Shown in pieces: positions 1 through 60,987 of a stretch of 64,000 nucleotides of DNA. Under the pieces are notes generated by a model, which did no database searches, was not told the origin of the DNA, and saw nothing but the letters and a program-made list of their open reading frames with translations. Made by a program: the position numbers and the translations under genes. Each line of letters opens with the position of its first letter. Position 1 is the first letter of the stretch. Location: the IMG/VR virus record IMGVR_UViG_3300042868_009074, positions 1-64,000 of that record; one strand, given 5' to 3'.

Positions 1-162
1 GGAACAAATAAGGCTATTGCATTTTGTCAAGACTGCCCCGTAAAAACACCATGTGCTTTATATGCTATTGAAAATAATATTAACCATGGTGTATGGGGCG
101 GTCTATCAATTCGTGCAAGAGCTGTTATCCGAAGAAATACTAAAATTAAATCACTCCACTAG
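1..162 (+). CDS. whiB: WhiB-family transcription regulator (5' truncated by window edge)
   Basis: Frame 1 reads GTNKAIAFCQDCPVKTPCALYAIENNINHGVWGGLSIRARAVIRR...*, with CxxCPVxxxC and GVWGG WhiB hallmarks. Confidence 0.9.
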   Translation, partial: GTNKAIAFCQDCPVKTPCALYAIENNINHGVWGGLSIRARAVIRRNTKIKSLH

Positions 163-971
163 ATAAGTAACAATAGAAGTAGAATGAATCATCGAGCCAG
201 ATTTGTAACAGGCCTTGGAAATGAATCACAATCACAAATTAGTAACATCTGTTGTAAATGAATCACCACAAGCAAATAAATAACATAGAGAATAAATGAA
301 TCATTGCATTTGACAAGTAACAATTTTTTCGAATGAATCAGAACGCACAATTTGTAACGATAAATGGAAATGAATCAACAAAACAAATTAGTAACATGGG
401 TGTTGAATGAATCACTGGAAGTAACAAGTAACACGAGCCGAAAATGAATCATTTGTCTGGATTAGTAACACATTATTAGAATGAATCATTAGCTTGGATT
501 AGTAACATATTATTAGAATGAATCAATCAAAACGAATTGTAACATTGTTCGCAAATGAATCAAAGCGCCTAACTAATACCATAGGAAGAAAATGAATCAC
601 TCCCTCAGAGAATACCATTTCCTTCGAATGAATCAATGGGATCAACTAATATCAATTAAACAGAATGAATCATCCAGTCGGACTTATATCATGACCAATA
701 AATGAATCATAGTTACGGACTTCTAACATATCTAGTAAATGAATCGCCACTCTTGACCTGTAACAAATCATGCGAATGAATCATCCTAAATTATAAACTA
801 TCACCAAAATGGAATGAATCACATTGTTCGATTAGTATCACAGTTATCAAATGAATCAGATCAAAAGAACTAGTATCACTACAACCAAATGAATCATTGA
901 TTCGGATTTATATCACAATAACAAAATGAATCATACCTATCTATCAGTAACATTAGAAGCGAATGAATCAA
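163..971 (+). repeat. Periodic array of 22 units (~37 bp): AATGAATCA-N12-14-(mostly R)TA(A/T/C)CA-N9, with unique spacers
   Basis: AATGAATC(A) starts at 183,220,257,295,332,369,406,443,480,517,554,591,627,664,701,738,775,813,850,888,925,962; second motif GTAACA/GTATCA/ATATCA/ATACCA at a near-fixed offset; half unit at 163-182. Confidence 0.95.
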
Positions 972-1024
972 ATTTGCAGTCTATGCAAAGATATGAAAAC
1001 AATATTAATACAAAAGGATAAATA

Positions 1025-1462
1025 ATGCTTCTATCTATGATGCTAATTCTTGCAGTCACTTCAACTCTTTTAGAGTTAATGATTGCTGCCAGAGTCCCAG
1101 CTTGGCGCAGACTTTCTGCTAAAAGCCCACTGTTTAATTTATTAAACTCATTGTTTATCTCATATATTATGGGTATAGCATTTGGTGCAGCTGGCCTCAT
1201 TGCCTTGGGTGCAGGTGTAATATCAACTGTACTCTCAGTACCTGGATATCAATTCCTTTATTGGAATTACGATAGCCCTATGGCAAAACGCCATGGTGGA
1301 AGTATGTATCAACATACATTCAAGAAATGGTCTACAACCATTACTGACTTCTTCCACCTTATCTATAAGATTTTACGAATTCTTACAGCTCCAATATGGA
1401 TCACTCGCGCAGCGATTGTGAAATATAACGCATTCAAAAATCGTAAATCTGCAATCGCTTAA
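1025..1462 (+). CDS. Hypothetical membrane protein (about 3 TM segments)
   Basis: 145-aa ORF with hydrophobic stretches; AAAGGA upstream. Confidence 0.7.
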   Translation: MLLSMMLILAVTSTLLELMIAARVPAWRRLSAKSPLFNLLNSLFISYIMGIAFGAAGLIALGAGVISTVLSVPGYQFLYWNYDSPMAKRHGGSMYQHTFKKWSTTITDFFHLIYKILRILTAPIWITRAAIVKYNAFKNRKSAIA

Positions 1463-1484
1463 TTTATTATTAAATATATCAAGC

Positions 1485-1510
1485 AAAAAAAGGGAAGAGA
1501 CAATCTTCCC
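1485..1510 (-). terminator. Hairpin GGGAAGA-gacaa-TCTTCCC with A-tract on its 5' side (terminator-like for - strand transcripts)
   Basis: Perfect 7-bp stem 1492-1510 preceded by A7 on + strand. Confidence 0.4.
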
Positions 1511-1542
1511 GCACAATCAATTTACTCAGGAGGTAAATAACC

Positions 1543-4074
1543 ATGGCAAATCGCCGTACCAACCGCACATATACACCTTCAGTACGTCTGCGGTCCATGC
1601 CACGTGGACCACTACGTTCTGTAAATAACTACCAGTTTGGATTCTATGACATTGGCGTTCTTCGCCACTGTCTTAACACCAGTAATCCTACAGAATATCG
1701 CGTAGCTGCACTGCCAATACCACAGAATGATATTGAGCTCAATGCTGCTAAGAAAATCATCCAACACCCAGCTGTTGAGTATGCCATTGTAGACAAGAAT
1801 AAGCTTGTTCTTACTCTCATAGATGGCAGCTCAAAAGGCTGGATGGGCAACCTCACCGAACTTGGCTACACAGTCAAGGGAGGTGGCAAGGCTGCCAAGC
1901 GTATGAAGTCATTTCATCGCCCAACTCTAATCAATGCTCACTTTGATCATCTCAACGTACAAATTGTTGAACCAACAGACTATTCTACGGTCGATTGGGC
2001 CAACGATGTATCTGACGATTATTCAACTCCAGAAGTCCTTGAGCGTCTGCTCGATGGCTGCTTCGTAGTCTCCTCGAGAATTATGAAGCAAGGCATTGAA
2101 AATCTACCAGTATATGAGCCATACAATACTCACGATACCGATGAGTATTATTATGACCCAAATATCCGTCGTCAACTTCAGAACTTTCTCGCAAATTCTA
2201 AAGTCTTTAATGCTCGCATTATTTGTAATCTCGGCACCATCAAGGGCAACATGATCGTATCTGATCGTTTGCCTGAAGGTATCGATGTAATCACAGCCCG
2301 TGCAAACATTAAGACCGAGGTTATCTATAACGGAGGTTATCGTTTACTCGCTGAGCCACAAGGCCCTAAGTCACGTGTTATCACTGACGATCAGACCGTA
2401 ATTAACTTTCCAAAGTTATTTCGTAAGTCTGAGATGGAAATGTGGCTTAAAGAAGAATATGAAAAGATGTTCCAAGATGCTATCAACGGTAAGTTGTTGC
2501 AGAACTGGAAGTCTATCTATACTCGACTTTGGCGAGACTCTGACGATATCGAAGATAAGGAAGTACAGGCTCGCATGAGCTATGTAGCATATCGTTGGGT
2601 AGCAGCAGGCTTGAATATTACGGATTCTCCGTGGCTATTTGAGAACCTTGCTATTTCACACGCTATGCCATTGCAAAAGCGTATACCCATTCCTTGTTCA
2701 GTCTATGAACAAATTATTCCAGAGTCTATTGCTCGCATGGCCGGCTATGACATTGATGTTGAAACTGAAACGATTCAACGTATCAATGAAATTGGCGTAC
2801 ATGTAGTAAATGACGTAGACTGGATTGAGATGTATGAATCTCATGGTGGTCACGACGCTGACGACTTCTTTAAGCTGTTCTACCGCCACATTGAAGGCGG
2901 AACATATGACGGAGAAAACGTAGTAATTGCTATTCGTTCACCGAATGGTAAAGGCGAGTATTCCGTATTTAAACATGTTGAAGGCCAATGGTCTCCAACG
3001 TGGGTAAAATCTAACGGAGAAGAAGTTAAGTTTCCTGTAGTAAATGGACGTGGATGGTCTACCAGATTATCCACAGCTATTCGCTTCAACGAAGTATCTT
3101 ACACTGGCTTGCCCTCTACATATCTCCCCTCAGATGCTCACGTATCTGAAAGCTATGACCACGCTCAAGTTATTGCTGACCTTCAGGCTGCAATGAACGG
3201 TGGCAATGTGGGACGCTATGTCAATGCAGTTATGCTGCATTCCATGGTATTTCCTAACCATCGTACTATGCAACTTTGTTCCTTAGAAGATGCTATTGAT
3301 GGGTGTACTCAAACTGCTGACCCAGCAGATCGTGCAGCCATCGATGAAGAAGCCAAAAAGCTTGTTCATGAAGTTATCGAGTCAGGTCGTCCTATCGACC
3401 GTGCCTTCTGGATGTCTCGTAACTTTAAGAACTCATTGAAGGAAGATCAAACAGTAGAACTATATGATGGAAAGATTACGCAAATTTATGATTTGTGTGC
3501 TCATTATTTCCAAGCATATCGTACTCGTGTAACCAAGTGGTCACAGGAAAACGCACGCCCAGATGATGCCATTCATCAGTTGGGTGCTCGTTTGTACTTC
3601 CATGCACTACCACACTTACGTCGTTTTCGTATGAATATCTACAATGCTAACTCAGCAGAAGTTATTCAGAACAACTCAAACGTACAACGTGATGCATGGG
3701 AAAACCTGTATCAAGGTATCATTGATACAATCGAAAGCTTTGAGAGAGCTCAGGATAAACATGACTTTGTCTTGTCATTATACTCTGCTTCTCTCAAGGT
3801 CACAACTTCTGGTGGGAAAATTTCCGACCAGATTGTTATGAATCGTATTGTTCATCCATATCTTGAACGAGCACTTCAGCACTACGGCTTAGCTAAACGT
3901 GTGATGATTGAGCGACGTCAAGACGGAACTCTTAATATTCAGCAAACAAAAGCTGATCAATGGACTTACAATCCTGATCAAGAAGAATCGAAAACTTTCG
4001 ATGACATCTTTGAATATCAGAAGTTCCACTCTAAACACTCACCCATTATTCACACAACATCCAACCGTGTATAA
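1543..4074 (+). CDS. Putative single-chain two-barrel RNA polymerase, RdRP(RNAi)/YonO-like, with a non-canonical GGHDADD catalytic loop
   Basis: Motifs LLDGCFVVS (cf. FSDGxGxIS), FNARI..GTIKGNMIV (cf. FQIR.GG.KGVL), TDDQTVIN (cf. LNRQ.I), GGHDADDF (cf. GSDLDGD), IRSPNGKGE (cf. KNPxxHPGD), GNVGRYVNA (cf. NLGxIxNA), EDAIDG (cf. AVDFxKTG); strong SD AGGAGG. Confidence 0.65.
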   Translation: MANRRTNRTYTPSVRLRSMPRGPLRSVNNYQFGFYDIGVLRHCLNTSNPTEYRVAALPIPQNDIELNAAKKIIQHPAVEYAIVDKNKLVLTLIDGSSKGWMGNLTELGYTVKGGGKAAKRMKSFHRPTLINAHFDHLNVQIVEPTDYSTVDWANDVSDDYSTPEVLERLLDGCFVVSSRIMKQGIENLPVYEPYNTHDTDEYYYDPNIRRQLQNFLANSKVFNARIICNLGTIKGNMIVSDRLPEGIDVITARANIKTEVIYNGGYRLLAEPQGPKSRVITDDQTVINFPKLFRKSEMEMWLKEEYEKMFQDAINGKLLQNWKSIYTRLWRDSDDIEDKEVQARMSYVAYRWVAAGLNITDSPWLFENLAISHAMPLQKRIPIPCSVYEQIIPESIARMAGYDIDVETETIQRINEIGVHVVNDVDWIEMYESHGGHDADDFFKLFYRHIEGGTYDGENVVIAIRSPNGKGEYSVFKHVEGQWSPTWVKSNGEEVKFPVVNGRGWSTRLSTAIRFNEVSYTGLPSTYLPSDAHVSESYDHAQVIADLQAAMNGGNVGRYVNAVMLHSMVFPNHRTMQLCSLEDAIDGCTQTADPADRAAIDEEAKKLVHEVIESGRPIDRAFWMSRNFKNSLKEDQTVELYDGKITQIYDLCAHYFQAYRTRVTKWSQENARPDDAIHQLGARLYFHALPHLRRFRMNIYNANSAEVIQNNSNVQRDAWENLYQGIIDTIESFERAQDKHDFVLSLYSASLKVTTSGGKISDQIVMNRIVHPYLERALQHYGLAKRVMIERRQDGTLNIQQTKADQWTYNPDQEESKTFDDIFEYQKFHSKHSPIIHTTSNRV

Positions 4075-4089
4075 AATTGGCTATTCAAA

Positions 4090-4135
4090 ACTGGGGAGAC
4101 GAGCTCGTCTCGTCTTCCCAGTAGGTCTATTTTTT
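4090..4135 (+). terminator. Intrinsic terminator downstream of the polymerase gene
   Basis: ACTGGGGAGACGAG-ctcgt-CTCGTCTTCCCAGT stem, then aggtctattttttc. Confidence 0.65.
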
Positions 4136-5337: not shown

Positions 5338-7011
5338 ATGACAATCATATTGCGACCATATCAAGAAGAAGCTCTTAACGCTATTTTAGAAAATTGTTCT
5401 AAAGGCGTTTCTAGGCAGCTTGTTGTACTACCTACGGGCGCAGGTAAAACAGTCATATTTTCACACCTTCCAATTATTAAACCAGACGCATTACCCATGC
5501 TAGTTCTAGCTCATCGTAGCGAATTGTTGGATCAAGCCAGAAATAAAATTATGGCTTCTAATCCACATCTTAGCGTAGAAATAGAACAAGCAGAGCGTAA
5601 AGCCGGTCAGGTTGACGTAGTTGTGGCATCTGTTGCCACTCTAGGTCGAAATAATACTCCTCGTATAGAGGAATACCCCAAGGATTATTTTAAATCCATA
5701 GTTATAGATGAGGCCCATCATGCTGCTGCTCCTAGTTATCGAAGAATTATTGACTTTTTCTCTCCTGATTTTCTCTTGGGCGTTACTGCGACGCCGCAAA
5801 GATCGGATTCTACTAGGTTAATTGACGTATTCCAAGAAATCGTCTACTATAAATCTATCCAAGATCTAATTGGAGAAGGCTATCTCTGCCCACTTGTTGG
5901 CTACAGAGTTAAATCAAACATAGACATTTCTAATGTCGAAATCAGAAACGGTGAATATGCACAAGATCAACTTGAAGAAGCTATTGATACTCCTGAGCGT
6001 AACGCTCATATCGTCGCTAGCTACCTTGCTTTGGCTAGTAATGAAAAGGCCATTGTATTCGCATCCGGCGTCAAGCACGCCGAAAACTTGGCCCTATCCT
6101 TTATCCAAGCGTCGGTAACGACAGAAGTGATAGTTGGGACTACTCCTCGAGAAAAAAGAGAAGAGGTCCTTGCGAATTTTGCCAAGGGCAAGGTTTCGGT
6201 TATTGTAAATGTAGGCGTTTTAACTGAAGGGTTCGACGAACCATCAGTCCAAGCTATTATACTAGCTAAACCCACTCGTTCAACTCTATTGTATACACAA
6301 ATTGTTGGACGTGGAACTCGCCTACATGAAAGCAAAGTATCTTGCAAAATAATCGACATTGCAGACACCACAAGAGGAAAGAAGCCTATTGGCCTTCCTA
6401 CTCTGTTGGGTCTTCCCCCAGAATTCGATTTAGAAGGACAGAGTCTAACAGACGTAGCTGAAAAGTTTAAAGAACTTGAAGACTTCTGCCCCGGTGAATC
6501 AGTTCGTGTTCTTAATCCACAAGACATTGAACTAGCATATACTAGAATTAACCTCTTTATGCCACCACCACCTAACCCCACTGTGCTAGAATATTCTAAA
6601 CTTGTTTGGGCTGAAGTAGGGGAAGATGACTATTATCTTGGTGTTTCTAATGGTGAGTCTCTTAGGATACATGCTGACACACTAGGCAGGTGGAATGTTA
6701 CCCTTAAAGATTCTAATACTAAAGAAGTAAAAATTCTTGGCATTACTGAAACTATGAGAGAAGCATTCGCTCGCAGTGATCGTTGGGTTCAAAACCACAG
6801 AACTTCAGCTATGAGCCTATTGGATTCATCCGCCACTTGGCGAGCAGATGGACCAACAGATTCTCAGCAAAAACTTCTCAAAAGAATAGGTATACCCTTA
6901 ACGTCAGACATGACTAAAGGTATGGCTAGTCAAATTATCTCTCGTTACTACGAGAGTAATCCCAAGCCTAAATGGCTTCAAAATAAAATATCTTATAAAA
7001 ATAAATGGTAA
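5338..7011 (+). CDS. Superfamily 2 DEAD/DEAH-box helicase (Irc3/ResIII-like)
   Basis: LRPYQ Q-motif, PTGAGKT, DEAHH, TAT, LTEGFD, QIVGRGTR; TATAAT 6 nt before ATG. Confidence 0.92.
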   Translation: MTIILRPYQEEALNAILENCSKGVSRQLVVLPTGAGKTVIFSHLPIIKPDALPMLVLAHRSELLDQARNKIMASNPHLSVEIEQAERKAGQVDVVVASVATLGRNNTPRIEEYPKDYFKSIVIDEAHHAAAPSYRRIIDFFSPDFLLGVTATPQRSDSTRLIDVFQEIVYYKSIQDLIGEGYLCPLVGYRVKSNIDISNVEIRNGEYAQDQLEEAIDTPERNAHIVASYLALASNEKAIVFASGVKHAENLALSFIQASVTTEVIVGTTPREKREEVLANFAKGKVSVIVNVGVLTEGFDEPSVQAIILAKPTRSTLLYTQIVGRGTRLHESKVSCKIIDIADTTRGKKPIGLPTLLGLPPEFDLEGQSLTDVAEKFKELEDFCPGESVRVLNPQDIELAYTRINLFMPPPPNPTVLEYSKLVWAEVGEDDYYLGVSNGESLRIHADTLGRWNVTLKDSNTKEVKILGITETMREAFARSDRWVQNHRTSAMSLLDSSATWRADGPTDSQQKLLKRIGIPLTSDMTKGMASQIISRYYESNPKPKWLQNKISYKNKW

Positions 7012-7012
7012 T

Positions 7013-8530
7013 ATGAAAAATAAAAAAGCATCAATACTAATAACAGCTTTACTTTTGTTTTCTACACAAAGTAATCTAATCTTTAATTCTAACCCTGTTC
7101 AAGCTAAATCTATTTCTAGCGTTAAGAAACGGGCTTATAAGAATATAAAGCTTGAGAAACGTATTGTTAAGAAGAAATCAGTAACTGTTTATCGTAAATT
7201 CTTAGATACATCAGTTCCTTACATAGGCGCTGATACAGCACATGCTTCTTCTAACAAAGGCAAAGGCACTTACGTAGTATTGATTGACACTGGCGTCAAT
7301 GTCGACCACCCCATGCTCAAAGGTAGAGTAGCTCTAGAAGCTTGCTTTACCTTATTTCGTTCATGCCCTAATGGCACTAACCAACAAACTGGAACAGGAG
7401 CAGCTGCACCTGTAGACTGGCATGGCTCTCACGTATCCGGCATTATGGCAGGATCTTATCAACAATATGTAGGCGTTGCTCCAGAAGCTAAGATTATAGC
7501 TATTAATGTATTCGATAAAGATTTATCTTCATCTGAAACAGCTATAACTTTAGCCTTAAATTGGGTTAACTCTATATCTAGGGACTATAATATAGCTTCA
7601 GTTAATATGAGTCTAGGAACTAGCAGAATATATCAAGGTTATTGTGACACAGTCTCTCCTAAAATGACTACTGCTGTTAAGAATTTGTATGACAAAAATA
7701 TAGCAGTAGTAGTGGCTGCTGGAAACTCGTATGCTTTAGGCATGAGTAGCCCAGCTTGCATTAGCTATTCAGTTAGCGTAGCTTCTATGACTTATGATGG
7801 TTATGTAAATGATTTTTCTAACTTATCTAAAAATACTACATTTGCTGCTCCTGGCTATCGAATTGTATCAGCTGGAGCTGGAACCACTATGAGAGCTGCC
7901 ACAGGCACATCTATGGCTGCTCCTCACGTAGCTGGTATATTTTCTATTTATAGACAAATGTACCCAACTCATACTTTACAGCAAGCCATTAATAGAATAA
8001 AAGCTAGCTCTAAAATAGCTACTGACTATTACTCTGATATTAAGATTTCAGCTATCAACATAGCTACACTATCCAATATAGAAGATAGCCCGACTACCAC
8101 AAGTAGTACAACTACCTTACCTTGGATTAATCCCCCAACTACAACTACGCTTCCAGTAACTACTACTACTTTACCAGAAACAATTGTTACTACAACTGTT
8201 CCTTCAGTTCCAGTAGTTACCACTACAACTATTGTATCTAAATTACCTTTATTTAAGCCAACTGATCTAAAGCTCCGTGCTTTAAAAATTAATTCAACTT
8301 ACTTTTACTTATCTTACAGTGATTCTACTGTTGATAAAACATTAGTTAATGATTACACTTTATCGTGCAACGATGGCTCTAAGTTTCCAGTTTCTTTAGA
8401 ATTAAATTATAACTCTCATGTGATTAAAGTAATGTCAAACATTGCTTTTACTTCATGTTATCTTTATGCCAATTTAGAAAATGGCACAACTAGTGCTAAT
8501 AGTTCACCTGCTATCATAACTTATGGATAA
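7013..8530 (+). CDS. Secreted S8 subtilisin-like serine protease with Thr/Pro-rich linker
   Basis: Signal peptide; catalytic motifs IDTG, HGSHV, AAGN, GTSMAAPHV. Confidence 0.92.
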   Translation: MKNKKASILITALLLFSTQSNLIFNSNPVQAKSISSVKKRAYKNIKLEKRIVKKKSVTVYRKFLDTSVPYIGADTAHASSNKGKGTYVVLIDTGVNVDHPMLKGRVALEACFTLFRSCPNGTNQQTGTGAAAPVDWHGSHVSGIMAGSYQQYVGVAPEAKIIAINVFDKDLSSSETAITLALNWVNSISRDYNIASVNMSLGTSRIYQGYCDTVSPKMTTAVKNLYDKNIAVVVAAGNSYALGMSSPACISYSVSVASMTYDGYVNDFSNLSKNTTFAAPGYRIVSAGAGTTMRAATGTSMAAPHVAGIFSIYRQMYPTHTLQQAINRIKASSKIATDYYSDIKISAINIATLSNIEDSPTTTSSTTTLPWINPPTTTTLPVTTTTLPETIVTTTVPSVPVVTTTTIVSKLPLFKPTDLKLRALKINSTYFYLSYSDSTVDKTLVNDYTLSCNDGSKFPVSLELNYNSHVIKVMSNIAFTSCYLYANLENGTTSANSSPAIITYG

Positions 8531-8724
8531 GATTAAACCTTCTTATCTATATAGTGATAGAAACAAAAAATGTTCATCTTGTTTTGTTATTTCAAAACAC
8601 GTTGAAAAATCTAAAAAATATGACATATTACTATGTATAGATTGTTTAAAGGATAAGATATTATCCGATACACAATCATCCAAAAACTAAGACAAAAATA
8701 CTCTATTACACAGAAAGGAAATTT

Positions 8725-9079: not shown

Positions 9080-9547
9080 ATGACCGAATTAACCCCACCA
9101 CTTCCTAATATGGATTCACCTAGATCCACAAACGGAATGAAGCAAATGGGAATCATTATGATTCTTCTTGCAGCCGTAGCTTTGCTTATTGGCATTCTCA
9201 TTGCATCACGCGATAACTCATCTGCTCCCGCAGCAACCAATGCTCCAGTCCAAACTTATGCTCCAGCTCCAGTTGTCAACAAGTATGAAGCTTATCTTGA
9301 CCATGTTTACAATAACTCTGGTCAAGCTAATACAATTACTAAAGCTTCTCTTATTGAATATGGCGATACTATTTGTTCTGCCTTAGATAATGGTAGAACA
9401 ATTCCTTATATCGTAGATTATCTTTCAAATAGTTCTTCTAGCGAAACCGATGCTGCTTTGTATGCCTCAGTAATCTTTGGAGCAATTACATATATCTGTG
9501 ATGAATACAAAGGTGATCTTAACCTTTATCTTTCTAACTCTAACTAA
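9080..9547 (+). CDS. Membrane-anchored DUF732-like protein
   Basis: N-terminal TM helix, Ala/Pro linker, YGDTICSALDNG...AITYIC two-Cys pattern typical of actinobacterial DUF732. Confidence 0.6.
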   Translation: MTELTPPLPNMDSPRSTNGMKQMGIIMILLAAVALLIGILIASRDNSSAPAATNAPVQTYAPAPVVNKYEAYLDHVYNNSGQANTITKASLIEYGDTICSALDNGRTIPYIVDYLSNSSSSETDAALYASVIFGAITYICDEYKGDLNLYLSNSN

Positions 9548-13554: not shown

Positions 13555-13842
13555 ATGATCGACATAGATCAACTCTATCAAAATGAAATTGATTTATTAA
13601 ATGATAGAATTTCTACTTTTACAGAATTCTCATTTAATATAAACAATCTATTTAAACAAACTCAAGGCGTTCGAAATTCTTTAGACCTAGCTCAAGAATA
13701 TGTTAATAGCAAAGATTATATAAACGGTTATAAGTCTCTTCTTCATTCTATTTCTTTATTAGTAAATATTAATGAAGATATACTATCTCAATATTCTCAA
13801 ATGTCTATAATCCTAAAGGATTCTAATGGCTCGCAAATTTAA
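13555..13842 (+). CDS. Hypothetical coiled-coil protein
   Basis: 95-aa ORF, SD AGGAG. Confidence 0.7.
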   Translation: MIDIDQLYQNEIDLLNDRISTFTEFSFNINNLFKQTQGVRNSLDLAQEYVNSKDYINGYKSLLHSISLLVNINEDILSQYSQMSIILKDSNGSQI

Positions 13843-14236
13843 AGTTAAAGGTCTCAAAAACCTCTCCGATGTTGTTCTTTCTCAAGTATCTTGGAAAGAC
13901 AAAGCACATTGTAAGACCAAAGAAGTTTCTATATTCTTTGGCAACCCTAAATCTAATGAAACTAATCTAGCTGTTTCTATTTGCAAGTCTTGTTCTGTTA
14001 GACAGGACTGTTTCTATGAGGCTATCCAGTATGGATATGACGGTGTTTGGGGCGGTTCTACTGCTGAACAACGACAGTCTATTATAGATGTAGTTATGGA
14101 ATCTAACATAACTAATCTAACAAAAGAAACATCTAATACTCTACTTTCCTATGTAGACATGATAGGTAAAACCAAAAATTCAGCAACAGCTGATCTTATA
14201 AACATCAAATTATCTGAATTGGATCCAAATGTCTAA
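13826..14236 (+). CDS. whiB: WhiB-family transcription regulator
   Basis: WKDKAHC...CKSCSVRQDC...GVWGG...R. Confidence 0.9.
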   Translation: MARKFKVKGLKNLSDVVLSQVSWKDKAHCKTKEVSIFFGNPKSNETNLAVSICKSCSVRQDCFYEAIQYGYDGVWGGSTAEQRQSIIDVVMESNITNLTKETSNTLLSYVDMIGKTKNSATADLINIKLSELDPNV

Positions 14237-17916: not shown

Positions 17917-19572
17917 ATGTCTAACGATACTAAGGAAATAAAAACCATCACTTTAGATGATTTAAATTACTTTTGGATGCCTAACGGTGCTCCATGCTTT
18001 ATCGCCAATAACTATGATGTTGTTGATGATTACTGCGATACTGTTGAAAGTTTTGGCTTTCAAATTTATTATATCATAACCGATAAAGAAACAAGTAAAA
18101 CTGTTCAAGTCAAAAACGACAAAGGAGTTATGATTCCAACTGAAGTATATGATTATACTCCAGCTGTATTTAAAGTTGTTAATAACTTTACAGGTCGTGC
18201 CGTCATGGAATCCAAAGAACCTTTCGGTACTTCATTCTGCCCAGTAAAAGAAGTAGCAGAGTATACTATGCCTTCAATTCCTCGGATTATTATCGATAAA
18301 CTTGATGAGTTCTTTAGATTAGTTCATGCTCAGCATGGCACTGAGTCTATTGTTATCTTGACTTATGATACCACTAAAGAAGGTTCTGAAGGTTGGGGCG
18401 TCTTAGTCCCCGAGCAAGAGAACAACTCTGTTCACTGCAAGTATGACAATGATTCTATTGCTGCTATTAAACCAGATCATGTCATGATTGTTGGCTCTGT
18501 CCACAGTCATCCTGAGATGTCGGCATATGCTTCTGGTACAGACCATGAAGACCAAGCTGACTTTGATGGCATCCATATTACTTATGGCTGGCAAAAATCA
18601 GTTAATGCTGGAGCTACCCAGTATCACTTGGAGCTTCAGATTGGTGGTTCTAACTATGTACTCAAACCTGAAGATGTATTTGAATACAACCCTCCTCCCA
18701 CTAAGGACCCTGACCCAGAGGTTCTAGAGTGGAGCTCTAAAGTAAAAAAAGTATCCCCCCCGCTTATGGGGGTTTCGGGTACTCAGGTGGCGCATACACC
18801 AAGCCAGTCGTACCAGGCAAGTTGGGCTCTTCAAGCGACCAACTCTCGACCTATTCAAGCTGGTATGGATACGATTAGTTCTTTCGATAGAACTAAATTC
18901 ATATCTGACCTAGGTACAGTTGAAGCAGATGCTGTAGTTGCTATAGAAATAGATGATTCAACTAATCCAGATCGCAACTGCTTGATCTGTTATTTTCCTC
19001 TAACTTTAGCTGATCTCAACACTGGCTTCTGCATGACTTGTGATACTCCTATAATCACTCCAGAAATGGGTCATAGAGATATTCTAGCATTCCTAGACTA
19101 TTACTGTGACCAACGTGCTTTGGATCCTACAGTTCCTTATTATGTTTACTGCATGGATGAAAATAATAATTCAAATAACTTTTTGATTAATATTAAATCT
19201 GCTGGTCAAATTTCTAATCTAGAAGATCCTGAAGTAGAATTATATTCTGGTGCTGACTTTCTAGAGTATACAGTTTGCTGCAGTACGCCATTAACTATGG
19301 TGGAACTGTGCAAGTGCACTGTTACTGTCTTAGAGGAACACGTTGCTGACTTTGACAAAGCACACAAGGAAGTAGACATCTATGATTCTACTGACGACTG
19401 CTTGTCATGTGATAGTTATTATCAAACTTCATGTCCTCAATTTAAAAATGCTTTAGTTAATTATGTAACTTATAATTCTATTGTAAATGTTCAAATAAAA
19501 AAATGCGACAACTATGTCTATTATAAAGACTTAACTGCCGTCAATAATTTCGAAAGTACTTATTATGACTGA
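17917..19572 (+). CDS. JAB/MPN+ metallo-isopeptidase with C-terminal Cys-rich domain (possible -1 frameshift isoform ending at 18878)
   Basis: HGTES (Glu) and GSVHSHPEMSAYASGTD JAMM motif; CLIC, CMTC, CLSC in the C-terminal part. Confidence 0.85.
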   Translation: MSNDTKEIKTITLDDLNYFWMPNGAPCFIANNYDVVDDYCDTVESFGFQIYYIITDKETSKTVQVKNDKGVMIPTEVYDYTPAVFKVVNNFTGRAVMESKEPFGTSFCPVKEVAEYTMPSIPRIIIDKLDEFFRLVHAQHGTESIVILTYDTTKEGSEGWGVLVPEQENNSVHCKYDNDSIAAIKPDHVMIVGSVHSHPEMSAYASGTDHEDQADFDGIHITYGWQKSVNAGATQYHLELQIGGSNYVLKPEDVFEYNPPPTKDPDPEVLEWSSKVKKVSPPLMGVSGTQVAHTPSQSYQASWALQATNSRPIQAGMDTISSFDRTKFISDLGTVEADAVVAIEIDDSTNPDRNCLICYFPLTLADLNTGFCMTCDTPIITPEMGHRDILAFLDYYCDQRALDPTVPYYVYCMDENNNSNNFLINIKSAGQISNLEDPEVELYSGADFLEYTVCCSTPLTMVELCKCTVTVLEEHVADFDKAHKEVDIYDSTDDCLSCDSYYQTSCPQFKNALVNYVTYNSIVNVQIKKCDNYVYYKDLTAVNNFESTYYD

Positions 19573-20320
19573 TCAAAAACGTTTTGTTCTTGTTGGAGCT
19601 GGTGGCATTGGCACTTGGCTTGCAGCTGGACTTGCTCGCATGTTAGAGTTTAAATATCCTGGCTCTGCTCTTATTATCGTCGATGGTGATACATATGAAG
19701 AACGGAACAAAGAGCGTCAATCATTTTCTCAGATGGGAAACAAAGCAGTTGCTACTGCCCATGACTTGACCCAACAGTTTCCTAACACTATGTTTATCCC
19801 AGTCCCTAAATGGGTTGTTGACGACAACTTTGGTGGAGTCACAGATGATCAAGATTCTCCTAAAATTAAAGCTTCTGCTTTGATTACCGAAAACGATGTA
19901 GTCTTTGCTGTTGTTGACAACTTTGCTGCTCGTAAGATTATCTTTGATGCTGCTCAAAACTTAGACAACGTTGACATCTTTACTGGTGGCAACGATGACG
20001 CTTTATTTGGTAGTGTTTATCATTACCAACGCCGTGATGGTCACGATGTAACTGACCATCCAGTGCATACTCATTCTGAATATGAAAATCCTCCAGACAA
20101 AAATCCTGGTGAATTATCATGTCAAGATCGTGCCAAAATCGAAGGTGGTACTCAGCTATTGGCTACCAATATGGCTGTAGCTGCCTTCCTTCTTGGTCGC
20201 GTACAAAAGACAATTGTGTCTAATCAAAATCCCGACGAAGCAGAAATTTATTTTGACCTTGGTATCGGCAAGTCCGAACCATATGATCGTCGACCAACCC
20301 TACAACCTGTAGTACAATAA
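19565..20320 (+). CDS. ThiF/E1-like ubiquitin-like protein activating enzyme
   Basis: GAGGIG, VDGDTYEERNKERQ, DNFAAR, candidate catalytic Cys in LSCQD. Confidence 0.9.
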   Translation: MTDQKRFVLVGAGGIGTWLAAGLARMLEFKYPGSALIIVDGDTYEERNKERQSFSQMGNKAVATAHDLTQQFPNTMFIPVPKWVVDDNFGGVTDDQDSPKIKASALITENDVVFAVVDNFAARKIIFDAAQNLDNVDIFTGGNDDALFGSVYHYQRRDGHDVTDHPVHTHSEYENPPDKNPGELSCQDRAKIEGGTQLLATNMAVAAFLLGRVQKTIVSNQNPDEAEIYFDLGIGKSEPYDRRPTLQPVVQ

Positions 20321-20334
20321 AGGAGATAACAGTT

Positions 20335-20592
20335 ATGACTGCTATGAATAATACCGGAGGAGCAGCACAGTCTGCTTCTGGCCAAATGGCAAATGTCCGT
20401 TTTGGCGTTTACACTCAACCAGCACCAGTTGCTGGAAAGACTGTTCGCGAAGTTCGCGAGCAGTTCTCAAAGCTTTGGGGAATACCTTCTGATGCAGTAG
20501 CATACAAGGGTAAAGACAAGCTCGATGAGGATACTGTTATCGGTGCATCTGATAACGTAGAGTTCCACCGCCGTGCTGGCGAAAAGGGTTAA
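20335..20592 (+). CDS. Ubiquitin-like (beta-grasp) protein ending in Gly
   Basis: VRFG...VAGKTVREVR..F...WGIP...LDEDTVIG.SDNVEF.RRAGEKG; SD AAGGAG; directly after E1. Confidence 0.78.
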   Translation: MTAMNNTGGAAQSASGQMANVRFGVYTQPAPVAGKTVREVREQFSKLWGIPSDAVAYKGKDKLDEDTVIGASDNVEFHRRAGEKG

Positions 20593-20614
20593 TTTAACTC
20601 TTCCCTAAATCTGA

Positions 20615-20662
20615 GGGAGAGTATGCTTAACTTACTTTGAGTGTACTCTCCCACTTTTTTTC
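20615..20662 (+). terminator. Intrinsic terminator after the Ubl gene
   Basis: 15-bp stem GGGAGAGTATGCTTA/TGAGTGTACTCTCCC followed by a T run. Confidence 0.8.
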
Positions 20663-20695
20663 AAAGCCACCAGTTACTAATCAAGGTTTATATTA

Positions 20696-22312
20696 ATGCT
20701 TTTTTCTCAAATAAAATTAGGTCATCCAACTTTATGGATTAAATCTATAGATTCTTTTAAGACTATAGAATCTATTGTAAATTATCCATCTAGAATTTAT
20801 TTTACATTAGATCCAGTTAAAGGTTTTTGTGAATATAAAAACCAAACTTGGAAACCAGTATTGGTAGACATGCCAAACCCAGATGATCCTGGTACAACTA
20901 TTAAAAAAACTACTTTTGATTTTGTAGTTGCAAACGAATTCCTTTCTACTTACCTAGAAGATAAGCCAAAGACATTTATATTTAACATCTTTGCTCAAGC
21001 TCAAGAGTTTGTAGGAAGTTATGCTGGCTTATTTAACCACGCTATGATGCAGTATCGTGATGCCTTTTGGACTAATGATTTATCTGAAATGCCTCTTCAG
21101 TATATTGTTACATCCCCATTTGATTGCCCTGAAGAATTTGCACACTTGTTTAAATTCGTAGAAATGGGCTATCCTTCTTCTGAAGAACTAACATCAGTTC
21201 TTTCTCATATCTCTACCTCTTCTGACGGTCAGTTAGTTAAGCCAGAGACAGTAAAAGATATTGTCAATGCCGGACTTGGTTTATCTGAGTCTGAGTTTAT
21301 CAACTTATCTTTACAATCTGTTTTAGAATGTGGCGAAGTATCTTCTGAATATATTTATTCTCAGAAGATGAGCGACATGAAGAAGAACGGCATACTTGAA
21401 ATCATCAAGCCTAAAGTTCACTTTCAAAATATTGGTGGCCTTGATGCCATTAAAGATTTGATTATACGTAATGCTAATCTATGGCATAACCCAGAACAAG
21501 CTGCTAAGTTTGGTATTTCTCCAATCCGTCGCATGCTTATGGTTGGGGTTCCAGGTACTGGCAAGTCAGCTATCTGTGAAGCTACTGCTAATGCCCTGGG
21601 TTTGGACCTAGCTCGTACTGGCATTAGCCAGGTAATGAACTCTTACATTGGTCAATCAGAGCAGAATATGCGTACTGTATTTAAACAAATCAATGCAATG
21701 GCTCCACTTTGTGTTTGGATCGATGAGTTTGGTCGAGATCTATCCGGTGGCTCCAGCTCGTCTCATGTAGATGGTGGCACTACAGACCGTGTCCACGGAG
21801 AGTTCCTTACAGGCCTTCAGGAGCTTCCTGACAACGTATTCTTGATGTGTGCAGCTAATCAGCTAGAACACCTTAAACCAGAGATGCTTCGTGCAGATCG
21901 TTTCGATAAGATTATGTTTGTAGGCTTGCCTTCATTTAGTGAGCGTTCTGATATTATTAAAATATATCTTTCCGACATTGACACAGATCATGTGTATAAT
22001 TATGATGCGATTTCTCATGCTACTCAGTATTTTACTGGTGCTGAGATCAAGTCTCTTATTAAGGAAGTTAAATTTTACGTTAGTTCTTCAGAACTTCGTG
22101 CAATCAATACCAATGATGTAGTTTCTTATGCTCCTAAAATGAGAAACATTCTTTGGAATAAAAGTCGTCCAATGATTCAAGACCTCTACAAAACAGCTAT
22201 AGATCAATGGGATTGGGCATCGACGGATCAGTTCGAAGATGCTAAACTTATAATGAACCCCAATCGTTCTACAGCACCTGTTTCAGCCCCTAAAATACCA
22301 GTATTTAAATAG
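20696..22312 (+). CDS. AAA+ ATPase (Ycf46/SpoVK/CDC48-like)
   Basis: GVPGTGKS Walker A, VWIDE Walker B, AAN...PEMLRADRFD second region of homology. Confidence 0.92.
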   Translation: MLFSQIKLGHPTLWIKSIDSFKTIESIVNYPSRIYFTLDPVKGFCEYKNQTWKPVLVDMPNPDDPGTTIKKTTFDFVVANEFLSTYLEDKPKTFIFNIFAQAQEFVGSYAGLFNHAMMQYRDAFWTNDLSEMPLQYIVTSPFDCPEEFAHLFKFVEMGYPSSEELTSVLSHISTSSDGQLVKPETVKDIVNAGLGLSESEFINLSLQSVLECGEVSSEYIYSQKMSDMKKNGILEIIKPKVHFQNIGGLDAIKDLIIRNANLWHNPEQAAKFGISPIRRMLMVGVPGTGKSAICEATANALGLDLARTGISQVMNSYIGQSEQNMRTVFKQINAMAPLCVWIDEFGRDLSGGSSSSHVDGGTTDRVHGEFLTGLQELPDNVFLMCAANQLEHLKPEMLRADRFDKIMFVGLPSFSERSDIIKIYLSDIDTDHVYNYDAISHATQYFTGAEIKSLIKEVKFYVSSSELRAINTNDVVSYAPKMRNILWNKSRPMIQDLYKTAIDQWDWASTDQFEDAKLIMNPNRSTAPVSAPKIPVFK

Positions 22313-38921: not shown

Positions 38922-38951
38922 GTTATAACCTTAAAATTAAAAACTAATTAT

Positions 38952-48297: not shown

Positions 48298-51200
48298 TTA
48301 ATCCTCATCATTTTTAATCATGGCGTGGACATAGTGAACCAAAAAGGCACAACCTGTAGCTATGATCGTAATTTTTCTAGTTTCTCCAGAAAGAGTTGCG
48401 AACACTACGACACTACCTGAAATGGTAAAAGCCAGTGCTGAAGTCTCCCTTGAGAATTTTTTAATAAAGCCCCATGGACTAAATTTCCTTTTCATTGTTT
48501 CCTCCTCGTATTTAAATATACTGTTTCTTGTGAAGTGGTTATCTTCTTGATCTTCCGGACCCTCTATTCCAGGGTCCTCTTCTTCTTCGCCTTCTGGATT
48601 CTCATCTTCCTTGCGACCATTGCTATTGGTTCCGTCGCCAGGACCTCCACCAGAGCCCCCAGAACCGCCTCCAGAGCCCCCAGAACCGCCTGATGGACCA
48701 GATGACCCAGTTCCTGCTCCCACGCCAACCGTAGCTGCTGATAGAGCTGCTGTAGCAGCCAAGAGAGTTCTACGAGATCCCACGTCTACCTGGGATCCAG
48801 TTGGCACATAGTCGTCAAGACCTTCTCCGTAAACGTCAATTTGAGTTTCAAATTCATCTTTAATTTCATCTGGGGCATCAGAAACTGCAGCTACCAAGGC
48901 TGCTTCCTCTGCTACAGATAGGTCACCAACTGGAATAGAATCAAAGATTTCAGCTGCCTGATCTGTGTCAATTGATTCCAAGACCTTCTCGCTGGTTGCG
49001 AGGTCAGTGGCCTGGTCTTCAGTAACGCCGTTTTCAATAACCGAATCAACTGCATCAGAGACCTGGTCTTCTGTAATGGTATCTGACTCCAAGACTCCAA
49101 CCAGTTCCTCAAACTGTTCATTCGATATCGGAGCATCTAAAATTGAATCAATAACAGAATCAAATTTTTCATCTGAAATAGGCTCATCAAAGATGTTGTC
49201 CAATGCAGCACTGAACTGTTCTGTAGATAGTGGCTCTTCAAAGACTGCTTGCACTGCAGCATCAAACTGCTCATCGCTCAGAGTTTTAACATCTTCAAAG
49301 ACGGCTGCTACTGCATCATCAAACTGAGCATCAGAAAGTGGACCATCAAACACTGCGGTAACAGCGTCTTCAAACTGTGCATCAGATAATTGAGTTGGGT
49401 CTTCAAATACTGCATCTACTGCAGCAGCGAAGTTCTCGTTAGACATGGGTCCATCAAACACTGATTCAATTACGGTAGCAAACTGAGTATCTGAGAGCTC
49501 TTGATCTAGAAGTGAGCTAACAACAGCGGTTAGTTGTTCTGGTGTTTCTGCGTCTGCAACTAAGTCATCAACTGCGTCTGCAATTCCTGCGTTAGACATA
49601 GGTCCATCAAAAATGTCTTCTACTGCAGCGTCTGCAGCGTCTTGAGTATCTTTAGGAACTATTATTTCTGGAGTTGGATCTTCAGGTATAACAACTGGAG
49701 TTACTTCTTCTGGAATTGTAGTAATAACTTCTGGGCTAACTGCTGGCGTATCTACTGGTTCAAATATTGTTTCAATAATGGTTGTTACAGGTGGCGAAAT
49801 TGTCGTAGTTGTTATTGTTTCTGGTTCTGGCGTTGAAACTGGAGTTAGATCTAGGTCTGGAATTGAAACAGTAGTATTTTCTGTTGGAAGAGTTTCGACA
49901 GGGGGAGGGACAACCTCTGGTGCAGTTGTTGTTGTTGTTGTGCCTGTTGGCACTTGTGGGACTATGGTTGTGGTTGTGGTGGTTGTATCCGGATCTGATG
50001 TTGTTGCATCAGCAACTTCCTGAGGACCATACAAACAGCTCCCTATTCCCTCGCCCACACATGGGGCGGTACCTGCTTGAATTTTAAATCGTACAGAACC
50101 ATAGCCAGTTTGACCTGAAGTATCAATCACATAAGTAGTATTTGCAGCATATGTCCAAACACCCCAACCGCCAGATTCTATGTTGTTATCTAAATTATAA
50201 AAAAGAATACTGTACATATACGGCTGCGTATTACTTGCATCTGGTGCATCCCAACTCAAGGTCACACTTCCATCGTCATTTGCTATGGCTGTTAAATTTT
50301 GGATAGAGTTAAAGTAAGGTACAGTAGTTGTGGTCGTTGTATCTGGTACTGTTGTGGTTGTAGCCGTAGTTGTTGTCGTAGACGTTGTTGTAGTAGTTGG
50401 CGGAAGAGTTGGTGCTGTTTCATTATTTGGCTCAACTCCACCAAACACCGCACATGAACTACCAGATTGATCGCAAGACAGCGTTGTTCCTATCTGGTCA
50501 TCAATCATTAAGACTGGTGGCAAACCTTGGTCATCTAAGTTGAACGATGTAAAGCCTAATTTATAAGTTCCAGTAACAGATACTTTATATGTTGATACTT
50601 GCCAACCAGTAGCACCGTAGGAGTTTGTCGAGTAGTCACCTGTGCCAGGGTTAGAAAATCCTAACAGTGCGTACGACTGATTAAAGTTATTAACTGTGAT
50701 TGCTGGAGTCGACGCAACGGTGACAGGAACAAGAGACGTAATAGATCCATCATTAAATGGAACGTAGTCAGTTGCCATATAGTTCCAAGACATTGTGTAT
50801 GTAATGCCAGCAGTTAATTGAACTTCACGAGTAATCCATGCTGCATCAGTTGGATTGCCACCGCCAAAACCAGATGCCTGTGCTTGTGACGACAGCATTG
50901 TTGTTATCTGAGATGTTTGAGTTGCAGAAAGACCAAGTGCTGCAGTAGCTTGAGTAAACGTTTGCTCACCTTTTGGCTGCAGGGCAACAGCATATGTTCC
51001 GCCCTTTGGAGAAAAAGTCCAGCTGCCTGCAGCAACTGCTGCAGCATAGTAAGGATTGTCGATTGTTTCGTATTGTGCAGGAGAGGTGTTTGGGATTACC
51101 CTGGTAATCGTTGGGCTCCCCATTGCTCCATTTGCGCCATGAGTAAATGTTCTAGAGCCATTGAATATTGTTACACCAGTTCCGCCACCGTTAATTGAAG

Positions 51201-51375
51201 TGCCAAGTGTTCCAGTTTGTGACCCTCTAGACCAGCCAGTTAGCGTGCCGTCTTCAAATCCAGCATTTGGTATAGATACAGAACTACCTGTAGCCCTTGC
51301 TGTTATTGGGGAAATCCAAGCAATAACAAATAATAATACAAGTATCCATGATCCACGACGTGGTATTATTCTCAT
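48298..51375 (-). CDS. Large secreted/membrane-anchored protein with Fn3-like domain, Thr/Pro linker and acidic 17-19-aa repeats
   Basis: Signal peptide; poly-Thr; about 9 repeats like VFDGPLSDAQFDDAVAA; GGS linker; two C-terminal TM helices. Confidence 0.8.
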   Translation of the reverse strand: MRIIPRRGSWILVLLFVIAWISPITARATGSSVSIPNAGFEDGTLTGWSRGSQTGTLGTSINGGGTGVTIFNGSRTFTHGANGAMGSPTITRVIPNTSPAQYETIDNPYYAAAVAAGSWTFSPKGGTYAVALQPKGEQTFTQATAALGLSATQTSQITTMLSSQAQASGFGGGNPTDAAWITREVQLTAGITYTMSWNYMATDYVPFNDGSITSLVPVTVASTPAITVNNFNQSYALLGFSNPGTGDYSTNSYGATGWQVSTYKVSVTGTYKLGFTSFNLDDQGLPPVLMIDDQIGTTLSCDQSGSSCAVFGGVEPNNETAPTLPPTTTTTSTTTTTATTTTVPDTTTTTTVPYFNSIQNLTAIANDDGSVTLSWDAPDASNTQPYMYSILFYNLDNNIESGGWGVWTYAANTTYVIDTSGQTGYGSVRFKIQAGTAPCVGEGIGSCLYGPQEVADATTSDPDTTTTTTTIVPQVPTGTTTTTTAPEVVPPPVETLPTENTTVSIPDLDLTPVSTPEPETITTTTISPPVTTIIETIFEPVDTPAVSPEVITTIPEEVTPVVIPEDPTPEIIVPKDTQDAADAAVEDIFDGPMSNAGIADAVDDLVADAETPEQLTAVVSSLLDQELSDTQFATVIESVFDGPMSNENFAAAVDAVFEDPTQLSDAQFEDAVTAVFDGPLSDAQFDDAVAAVFEDVKTLSDEQFDAAVQAVFEEPLSTEQFSAALDNIFDEPISDEKFDSVIDSILDAPISNEQFEELVGVLESDTITEDQVSDAVDSVIENGVTEDQATDLATSEKVLESIDTDQAAEIFDSIPVGDLSVAEEAALVAAVSDAPDEIKDEFETQIDVYGEGLDDYVPTGSQVDVGSRRTLLAATAALSAATVGVGAGTGSSGPSGGSGGSGGGSGGSGGGPGDGTNSNGRKEDENPEGEEEEDPGIEGPEDQEDNHFTRNSIFKYEEETMKRKFSPWGFIKKFSRETSALAFTISGSVVVFATLSGETRKITIIATGCAFLVHYVHAMIKNDED

Positions 51376-60789: not shown

Positions 60790-60987
60790 TTATTTTCCTT
60801 TTTTATTGATCTTCCTAAGGGTCTTAGCAAGGTTTGCCTGCTGTACCGTCAACTTACTATATTTTGATGGATTTTTGGTTACGGCTGATGCCATACCCGC
60901 TACAGATTTATTGGCCTTTTTAGCCTTAGCAGTAAACGCACCTGGGCGCTTGATTGCTCCCTGAATCCAGTTTTTCTTATCTGCCAT
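60790..60987 (-). CDS. Small basic conserved phage protein
   Basis: KNWIQGAIKRPGAFTAKAKK...ANLAKTL. Confidence 0.75.
   Translation of the reverse strand: MADKKNWIQGAIKRPGAFTAKAKKANKSVAGMASAVTKNPSKYSKLTVQQANLAKTLRKINKKGK

Follow-up and report, generated by a model that had tools for sequence, protein, structure and literature searches.

The window analysed here, 64,000 nucleotides (nt) of IMG/VR virus record IMGVR_UViG_3300042868_009074, carries near its start a tandem array of short, variable units on the plus strand (positions 148–971), which lies between the 3′ end of a WhiB-like gene and genes for a predicted membrane protein, TM145, and a polymerase, POL. We propose that this is, very probably, a dual-repeat TIGR (tandem interspaced guide RNA) array carried by an uncultured jumbo phage of freshwater, and that the gene for the TasA protein serving it is located just outside the window. 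The architecture of the array, the homology of its Tas partner, the co-occurrence of the two across phage genomes and the properties of the array as RNA all agree on this assignment. A first-pass annotation of the same DNA had read the WhiB gene, the array, the membrane protein and the polymerase as one functional module. The layout that it described, with the array between the WhiB gene and a co-directional pair of genes ending at a strong terminator, is confirmed at the level of coordinates. One of its alternatives, the array as a source of short RNAs, also holds to the extent that the array looks like a source of ~37-nt variable RNAs for an RNA-guided system, but the partners and mechanisms that it proposed are unsupported.

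The array has a dual-repeat architecture

TIGR arrays are defined by two alternating repeats of 8–12 nt, termed edge and loop, with spacers of ~9 nt between them (16 variable nt in SpTIGR; PMC12045711). They adjoin tas genes, begin with a truncated edge repeat and are free of extended RNA duplexes (Faure et al., 2025; PMC12045711). The array in the window conforms to this dual-repeat layout, whose unit is ~36 nt. It comprises 22 TIGR RNA (tigRNA) units of 36–38 nt, as read from a table of the units and the information content at each position. The units are anchored by ATGAATC[AG], which occurs 22 times between positions 184 and 963 at intervals of 36–38 nt (37 nt in 17 of 21 cases). Each unit runs from an edge repeat, RAAUGAAUCA (10 nt), through an 8-nt spacer A and a loop repeat to an 8-nt spacer B. 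The loop repeat is ~11 nt long (10–12 nt), with the RNA consensus GAUUAGUAACA and the DNA consensus GATTAGTAACA, and is looser than the edge repeat; its conserved box lies ~18 nt beyond that of the edge repeat, and the two 8-nt stretches carry no information content. The edge repeat is invariant over AATGAATC in all 22 units and reads UG..UCA in 21, the remaining unit having UCG. The loop repeat ends in CA in 21 of the 22 (ACA in 13, UCA in six, CCA in two) and has a box D-like G in 14. Edge and loop repeats alike therefore show a box D-like (xG) start and a box C-like (xCA) end, and there is no strict covariation between the third-last base of the loop repeat and the edge repeat. The first edge repeat is degenerate (AAATCA, 148–153) and sits inside the 3′ end of the WhiB gene, whose last codons it overlaps; 22 intact copies of RAATGAATCA follow, the last of them at 962–971. 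A short plus-strand hairpin, TTTGCA-GTCTA-TGCAAA, comes next (974–990). It was read from the sequence, having been missed by the terminator scan, and because it has no U-tract it is not a canonical intrinsic terminator. The sequence AATGAATCA is present in 21 copies in the array and in 11 copies, counting both strands, in the other 267 kb of the contig, so that the array is far beyond chance occurrence; no second such array was found elsewhere in the contig.

No complementarity between the two variable stretches was found in 113 units of 37 nt or in 227 units of 36 nt, and as RNA the array is less structured than its shuffles (z = +2.35). The lack of a conserved hairpin and the worse folding fit the dual-repeat type of TIGR array and not the stem-loop type. 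Structured RNA units were rejected on the same grounds, together with the absence of an Rfam match. A coding repeat was rejected as well: the plus strand across the array contains no open reading frame (ORF) of at least 60 amino acids, and the 37-nt period breaks the frame. Some 36-nt arrays in other phages keep an ATG frame yet contain stops. CRISPR arrays are likewise tandem repeats with variable spacers, and are transcribed and cut into unit-length guide RNAs. A CRISPR-Cas system, however, would have a single repeat of 25–36 nt, spacers of similar size and cas genes, whereas the array has two different repeats of 10–11 nt and two 8-nt spacers per unit, and neither cas genes nor any known machinery for adaptation; no Cas family appeared in Pfam scans of the tested ORFs (1–22.3 kb) or in the annotations of 11 kb upstream. 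TIGR systems also differ from CRISPR in reading both DNA strands and in needing no protospacer-adjacent motif (PMC12045711). Searching the literature for the repeat sequence brought up nothing relevant.

The experimentally validated SpTIGR-TasH system of Salicola phage CGphi29 is built alike. Units taken from its record run RAAGCGAGCCA, 8 nt, AAGACAACCA, 7–8 nt, giving the same edge and loop repeats of 10–11 nt and 8 + 8-nt spacers, with the array on the Tas strand. The repeats themselves differ (RAAUGAAUCA and GAUUAGUAACA in the window, RAAGCGAGCCA and AAGACAACCA in SpTIGR), and the unit in the window is 37 nt, not 36.

A Tas gene lies upstream of the array

The contigs that reveal the partner gene were found by an exact-match search of metagenome contigs followed by protein look-up. 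Five of them match the window over 932–2116 nt, L131, L132, L134 and L135 at 100% identity and L136 at 99.9%; L132, L134, L135 and L136, which come from the protein look-up, are from a different sample each, and the same 22 units make up the array in every one. They show that in the phage to which the array belongs (phage A, see below) the order of genes towards the array is Tas, five small genes, WhiB (81 amino acids) and array. The Tas gene (L134:1528–2379) encodes 283 amino acids and lies on the array's strand, 2.3 kb to the left of window position 1, on contigs identical to the window. A same-strand Tas gene is thus found near the array, as expected of a TIGR-Tas system, albeit outside the window, which is why the first-pass annotation missed it. 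The phage A protein is 77% identical to the Tas protein of locus L001, and among cultured-phage records Salicola phage CGphi29 alone has a tblastn match to it.

In loci of very different phages the array begins ~32 nt past the stop codon of a same-strand gene for a protein of 265–320 amino acids, and these proteins are homologous to one another. A profile of the family matches the solved TasH structures (E = 1.6e-58), 9mty (E = 1.5e-35), whose PDB title names only an IS110 C-terminal-domain protein, and the IS110-family transposases IS621 and ISCro4. Family members belong to phrog_4285 and match the IS110 C-terminal domain of Pfam (PF02371) weakly. Judged by this homology, the array's partner belongs to the Tas (Nop-domain) family of TIGR-Tas systems. 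The region in common with SpTIGR-TasH is the Nop domain, in which the Tyr/His pair is kept: Y264 and H271 of phage A Tas (PRPYIIAHGDH) align with Y289 and H296 of SpTasH at the same +7 spacing, which places the pair on the C-terminal loop of the domain. Y289 and H296 are the residues with which SpTasH cuts pre-tigRNA (PMC13421893). Phage A Tas has no HNH-like N-terminus and no HNH or RuvC nuclease domain, and is accordingly of the TasA type; in this it differs from SpTasH, which has an N-terminal HNH nuclease. The two systems differ further in that the Tas gene of phage A is 2.3 kb away with six genes between, in that its array has no terminator, and in the host, which is probably a freshwater actinobacterium and not a halophile. 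Nop-only effectors of this kind are expected, by analogy with TasA systems, to bind DNA without cleaving it. MbTasA, which is nuclease-less, acts as an RNA-guided transcriptional repressor (Xu et al., 2026; bioRxiv 10.64898/2026.09.09.750476), although it comes from a Minisyncoccota bacterium and not from a phage.

Right after the Tas stop codon (L132:8936–9052) there is a GC-rich hairpin followed by a degenerate TIGR unit (..GAATGTATCAATGAATTATC..CTTGTAACA..), which resembles the remains of an array formerly starting directly behind Tas. This suggests that Tas-array is the ancestral order and that the WhiB-containing block was inserted later.

Arrays co-occur with Tas genes and mostly lack the polymerase

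Loci came from two separate scans of viral contigs, one for the polymerase and one for three copies of box A at the right spacing; a reversed-pattern control for the array scan gave zero matches. A same-strand array with a period of 34–39 nt accompanies the Tas gene in 76 of 80 loci. It is always on the Tas strand and, in almost all loci, directly downstream of Tas. The polymerase lies within 10 kb in 11 of the 80 loci, all 11 belonging to the lineage of the window, and is absent from 69, nearly all of which bear an array. Viewed from the polymerase, with 10 kb on either side, 10 of 41 loci contain an array and 25 a Tas-like gene, while 16 contain neither; at 31 of the 41 there is no array. 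Five complete array-rich jumbo phages (12 to 41 array-unit matches) each have one Tas (E = 1e-85 to 1e-106), and a polymerase profile search of them returned none in five, the same profile recovering both copies in the window's own contig as a positive control. A WhiB gene next to the array is seen only in phage A and one relative, L002/L003. The WhiB protein and the polymerase had been put forward as the array's functional partners; the conserved partner is instead Tas. The locus counts and the five complete phages establish both that polymerase loci mostly lack the array and that arrays occur without the polymerase, and each of these speaks against a module of the two.

Within the lineage of the window (polymerases 52–76% identical), the AATGAATCA array has a 37-nt period and is always co-oriented. 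Here Tas, array, TM145 and POL stay neighbours through three gene orders, the array being upstream of TM145–POL (window, L001), between TM145 and POL (L002, L004, L005) or downstream of POL (L007, L017, L046, L080, L050). In L001, two strong intrinsic terminators, at 4017–4052 and 8544–8581, bracket exactly these four elements, implying a single transcription unit, and a terminator scan of the window found none between the array and TM145–POL. Tas, array, TM145 and POL are therefore probably co-transcribed, and the shared transcription unit could reflect an early 'take-over' operon. What survives of the proposed module is this co-location in one lineage, which points to a shared transcription unit and not to a shared mechanism; we found no evidence of mechanistic coupling.

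Many unrelated large phages have 36-nt arrays in which the edge repeat is again AAUGAAUCA but the loop repeats are others (such as AGUAUCA, GAGAACCA and AGAAACA), and some have at least five dispersed arrays per genome, on both strands, with a single Tas gene. The IMG/VR jumbo phage contigs G001–G005 (141–320 kb) share this edge repeat and have several arrays and one Tas each; in G001 the arrays are at 57.8, 85.4–86.8, 153.2, 207.8–208.3 and 226.3 kb.

Turnover of units, and searches for their targets and transcripts

The array in the window (184–971) and that of L002 (5391–5909) have eight units that match at 35–37 of 37 nt, in a different order and with unshared units interleaved. Between these two loci the polymerases are 63% identical and the WhiB proteins 92%, whereas L001, with a closer polymerase, shares no array units with the window. 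This pattern indicates a turnover of units and their reshuffling through recombination between repeats. Selection on the spacers was rejected as an explanation, the shared units reflecting a recently exchanged WhiB-array segment (hence the 92%) plus unit shuffling.

Several observations weigh against identifying the array as a TIGR locus. The unit is 37 nt long where the canonical length is 36, and the loop repeat is loose in both its G and, to a lesser degree, its CA. The terminator scan detected no U-tract terminator directly after the array. Tas and array are not adjacent, with six genes between them, and Tas is seen only on other contigs, identical over 932–2116 nt, and not on the window's own. 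A search for spacer targets, kept to phage DNA because 16 nt is not specific enough for large databases, also came up empty. The geometry derived from published cut positions and 8-nt 3′ overhangs joins spacer A to the reverse complement of spacer B, and with this or the opposite geometry the 16-nt targets had no exact match in 1.9 Mb of phage DNA, phages A and B included; allowing up to one mismatch gave 7 hits in the same DNA, with ~6 expected by chance (an estimate). Finally, two public metatranscriptome runs yielded only two contigs of ~190 nt in the polymerase gene and one 151-nt array contig. The latter is the sole possible trace of array RNA, carries no strand or end information and could be DNA carry-over. 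This riverine contig matches two units exactly (window 627–709) with different flanks, which indicates that a related array is present in an RNA library.

Genes and terminators around the array

The WhiB-like gene enters the window at its 3′ end (1–162, plus strand, frame 1, stop codon 160–162; Pfam PF02467, E = 6e-12). Its full product of 81 amino acids is complete at L131:1362–1607, on a contig that is 100% identical to window positions 1–932. TM145, a predicted membrane protein of 145 amino acids, is encoded by an ORF at 1025–1462 on the plus strand. It has no Pfam family and a weak match to phrog_7294, and is conserved next to the polymerase, on its upstream side, across the lineage (synteny in L001, L006, L007, L017, L046 and L080). 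POL, an ORF of 843 amino acids (1543–4074, plus strand), follows. The WhiB-array-TM145-POL stretch is closed by a plus-strand intrinsic terminator (feature 4090–4135; hairpin and T-run 4090–4122, a 14-pair stem with eight G–C pairs), which has equivalents after POL in L001 (8544–8581) and L002 (8561–8602).

Homologues of the polymerase fall into 275 clusters in metagenomes, and sequence searches of Pfam, PHROGs, PDB sequences and 50,697 GenBank phage records were empty. Nine distant homologues had no Pfam hit either, and the RNA-dependent RNA polymerase (RdRP) family of Pfam, PF05183, was suggested solely by language-model neighbours, which fell in PF05183 clusters. Prediction from the single sequence was useless (pLDDT 33) and was repeated with an alignment of 104 sequences, from which AlphaFold produced a model with a pLDDT of 92 and a pTM of 0.92. 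In Foldseek this model matches maize RDR2 (E = 1e-7, probability 1.0) and the Thermus phage RNA polymerases P32 gp64 and P74 gp62 (E = 4e-5 to 5e-4), and in VIA-align it gives Z = 11.7 over 567 residues with RDR2 and Z = 8.9 with P74 gp62 and P32 gp64. Isolated double-psi beta-barrel matches fall at residues 131–273, and the model contains a core of two such barrels. D438, D440 and D441 (GGxDxDD), K119, K234 and R465 are invariant in 104 homologues, the third Asp being one position off the metal-binding DxDxD. According to the model, then, the 843-residue protein is a two-barrel enzyme of RdRP fold, and the earlier label 'RdRP-like' was right as a statement about fold. P23-45 gp64 / P74-26 gp62, gp66 of phi14:2 (a crAss-like phage), QDE-1 and RDR2 all have this fold in common with it, the predicted common features being the pair of double-psi beta-barrels and a metal-binding loop that is acidic and invariant; it differs from them in having no sequence-level family match and a DxDD instead of a DxDxD motif. 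Among phage enzymes the nearest in structure is P23-45 gp64, which uses DNA as its template in transcribing the early and middle genes of the phage (PMC10770324). By analogy, the polymerase most likely serves as the phage's own DNA-dependent RNA polymerase.

The first-pass annotation had also likened array units, read on the minus strand, to a motif upstream of putative late genes. The resemblance is weak. TGTTACTAAT occurs exactly in four of the 22 units and with at most one mismatch in eight, GTTACTAT has 19 copies across the contig, close to the ~18 estimated from base composition, with four upstream of genes, and TGTTACTA was never found upstream of genes in non-coding DNA. In an unbiased count of 8-mers over the 80 nt upstream of genes, the motif that truly stands out is TTACTATA(T), which is enriched 12.5-fold and occurs in 14 upstream regions across the contig; the array has no copy of it. 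Its sites include minus-strand positions 38951, 44442, 48047 and 61849 and plus-strand position 60854 of the window, and it mostly precedes minus-strand, structural-looking genes. TTACTATA(T) is a candidate promoter of a phage-specific stage of transcription, perhaps one served by the two-barrel polymerase. Sigma-70-like matches in the array number 16 with 20.5 expected, which is no enrichment. Sigma-70 promoters, IHF/Fur boxes and GlnR-type boxes were dropped as readings of the array, there being no promoter enrichment and the spacing and variable positions being unfit.

Alternative explanations

Three other accounts of the array were weighed, the first being the functional module. In that case WhiB or the polymerase would bind to the array as to a battery of sites, or the RdRP-like enzyme would use it as a template to make or amplify short variable RNAs in a system resembling RNA interference (RNAi). 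The parts are indeed adjacent and co-oriented, the Tas-array cassette stays beside TM145 and POL in three gene orders, the terminators of L001 bracket exactly Tas-array-TM145-POL, and the polymerase has the fold of the RdRPs of RNAi pathways. Yet array and polymerase are found apart at most loci of either kind and in the five complete phages, the WhiB-array adjacency is limited to phage A and L002/L003, the link through the late-promoter motif fails, and P23-45 gp64, the closest phage enzyme by structure, transcribes phage genes in a DNA-dependent manner (PMC10770324). We regard the module as very unlikely.

A role at the level of DNA, as origin iterons or a sopC-type centromere (12 × 43 bp) near the helicase gene, draws on the conservation of only two short boxes at a fixed 37-bp spacing (~3.5 helical turns), on the several arrays per genome of array-rich relatives and on a helicase gene 4 kb away. 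The sopC locus of the F plasmid and plasmid iterons likewise consist of tandem units of ~40 bp with a short conserved box, but the array in the window is strand-specific, Tas-associated and devoid of a palindromic core. An initiator or partition gene would be expected nearby, whereas neighbourhood scans found no Rep or Par family and the conserved neighbour is a same-strand Tas (76 of 80 loci), nearly always directly upstream of the array. The xG...xCA boxes in both repeats and the 8 + 8-nt spacers have the geometry of tigRNAs, and published arrays of such architecture act as RNA, which makes binding of proteins to the DNA repeats highly improbable. We give scarcely any credence to a tandem battery of promoters through which host RNA polymerase or the phage polymerase would drive TM145 and POL. 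In the window, L001, L002 and L004 the array is co-oriented with TM145–POL and lies directly upstream, as this idea requires, but in L007, L017, L046 and L080 it is downstream of POL; the lack of enrichment in sigma-70-like matches and the absence from the array of the genome's real upstream motif, TTACTATAT, also speak against it. A spacing of 37 bp is, moreover, smaller than the footprint of RNA polymerase.

Two related phages are joined in the contig

The window belongs to contig G000 (267,766 bp), which is a chimeric assembly of two related phages. Positions 1–50,536 are collinear with 208–267.6 kb of the same contig at 30–92% protein identity, and the last 127 bases repeat 50,537–50,663 exactly. 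Collinearity and repeat together indicate that a 50.5-kb fragment of phage A, which holds the array, has been joined to a circle of ~217 kb from a related phage B (50,537–267,639). Phage B has its own TM145 (208,038–208,553), a polymerase paralogue 53% identical to that of the window (210,228–212,771) and a Tas paralogue of 251 amino acids (215,553–216,308). This paralogue was considered and rejected as the array's partner: it is divergent, has neither the C-terminal Tyr/His processing loop nor a dual-repeat array nearby, and belongs to the other phage of the chimera. A 159-nt tandem repeat (12.9 copies, 260,059–262,101) falls in a region that is paralogous to a minus-strand ORF of 1025 amino acids in the window (48,298–51,375); the region probably encodes a repetitive fibre-like protein, and it is the site where the assembly broke.

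Downstream of the terminator, the window contains genes for a superfamily 2 helicase (5338–7011), an S8 subtilase (7013–8530) and a DUF732 protein (9080–9547), a second WhiB gene (13826–14236) and a cluster of JAB, ThiF and AAA+ genes (17917–22312), suggestive of a modification module of the ubiquitin-like or Pup-like kind. The presence of WhiB and DUF732 genes suggests that the host is an actinobacterium, probably from freshwater.

Discussion

With Tas as their only partner, published TIGR arrays undergo transcription and processing in E. coli (PMC12045711). For phage A we infer that the array would be transcribed from the plus strand as part of a long operon running from TasA through the five small genes, WhiB, array, TM145 and polymerase to the terminator. 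The pre-tigRNA would be cut within the edge repeats to yield tigRNAs of ~37 nt, each with two 8-nt spacers, and the likely nuclease is the phage's own TasA, which would act through Tyr264/His271 if these residues work as their SpTasH homologues Y289/H296 do. Since neither an HNH nor a RuvC domain is present in this Tas, cleavage is not expected; RNA-guided binding of DNA would instead interfere with transcription or replication at as many as 22 sites of the host or of competing mobile elements. WhiB, TM145 and the polymerase would in this scheme be operon neighbours, probably co-transcribed, and not required components.

A closer relationship, in which the TasA-TIGR cassette is functionally wired to the two-barrel RNA polymerase and the membrane protein in this lineage, seems unlikely to us. 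It is suggested by the retention of the cassette in one terminator-bounded operon through three rearrangements, with no terminator of its own. If true, the polymerase might make the pre-tigRNA, or pre-tigRNA processing might control expression of the downstream polymerase mRNA; another possible link is an early take-over module in which TasA-tigRNA and the phage polymerase act together, the former steering or blocking transcription.

The analysis removes the tempting reading as a phage RNAi system and settles the identity of an eye-catching non-coding array. It also carries a practical warning: the real partner gene fell beyond the window's edge, and the contig combines two related phages in one chimeric assembly. 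TIGR-Tas systems, which are RNA-guided and target DNA, have been described recently (2025), and the variations found here are minor, namely a unit of 37 nt, the embedding of the array in an operon and its linkage to a two-barrel RNA polymerase. With these, the phage A locus adds a long (22-guide), TasA-type TIGR array from an uncultured jumbo phage whose hosts are probably freshwater Actinobacteria, and it brings out an edge repeat, AAUGAAUCA, that is common to the TIGR arrays of many unrelated large phages. The lineage in which the array sits within the polymerase operon would be a reasonable place to seek a regulatory or take-over role for TIGR systems in phages.

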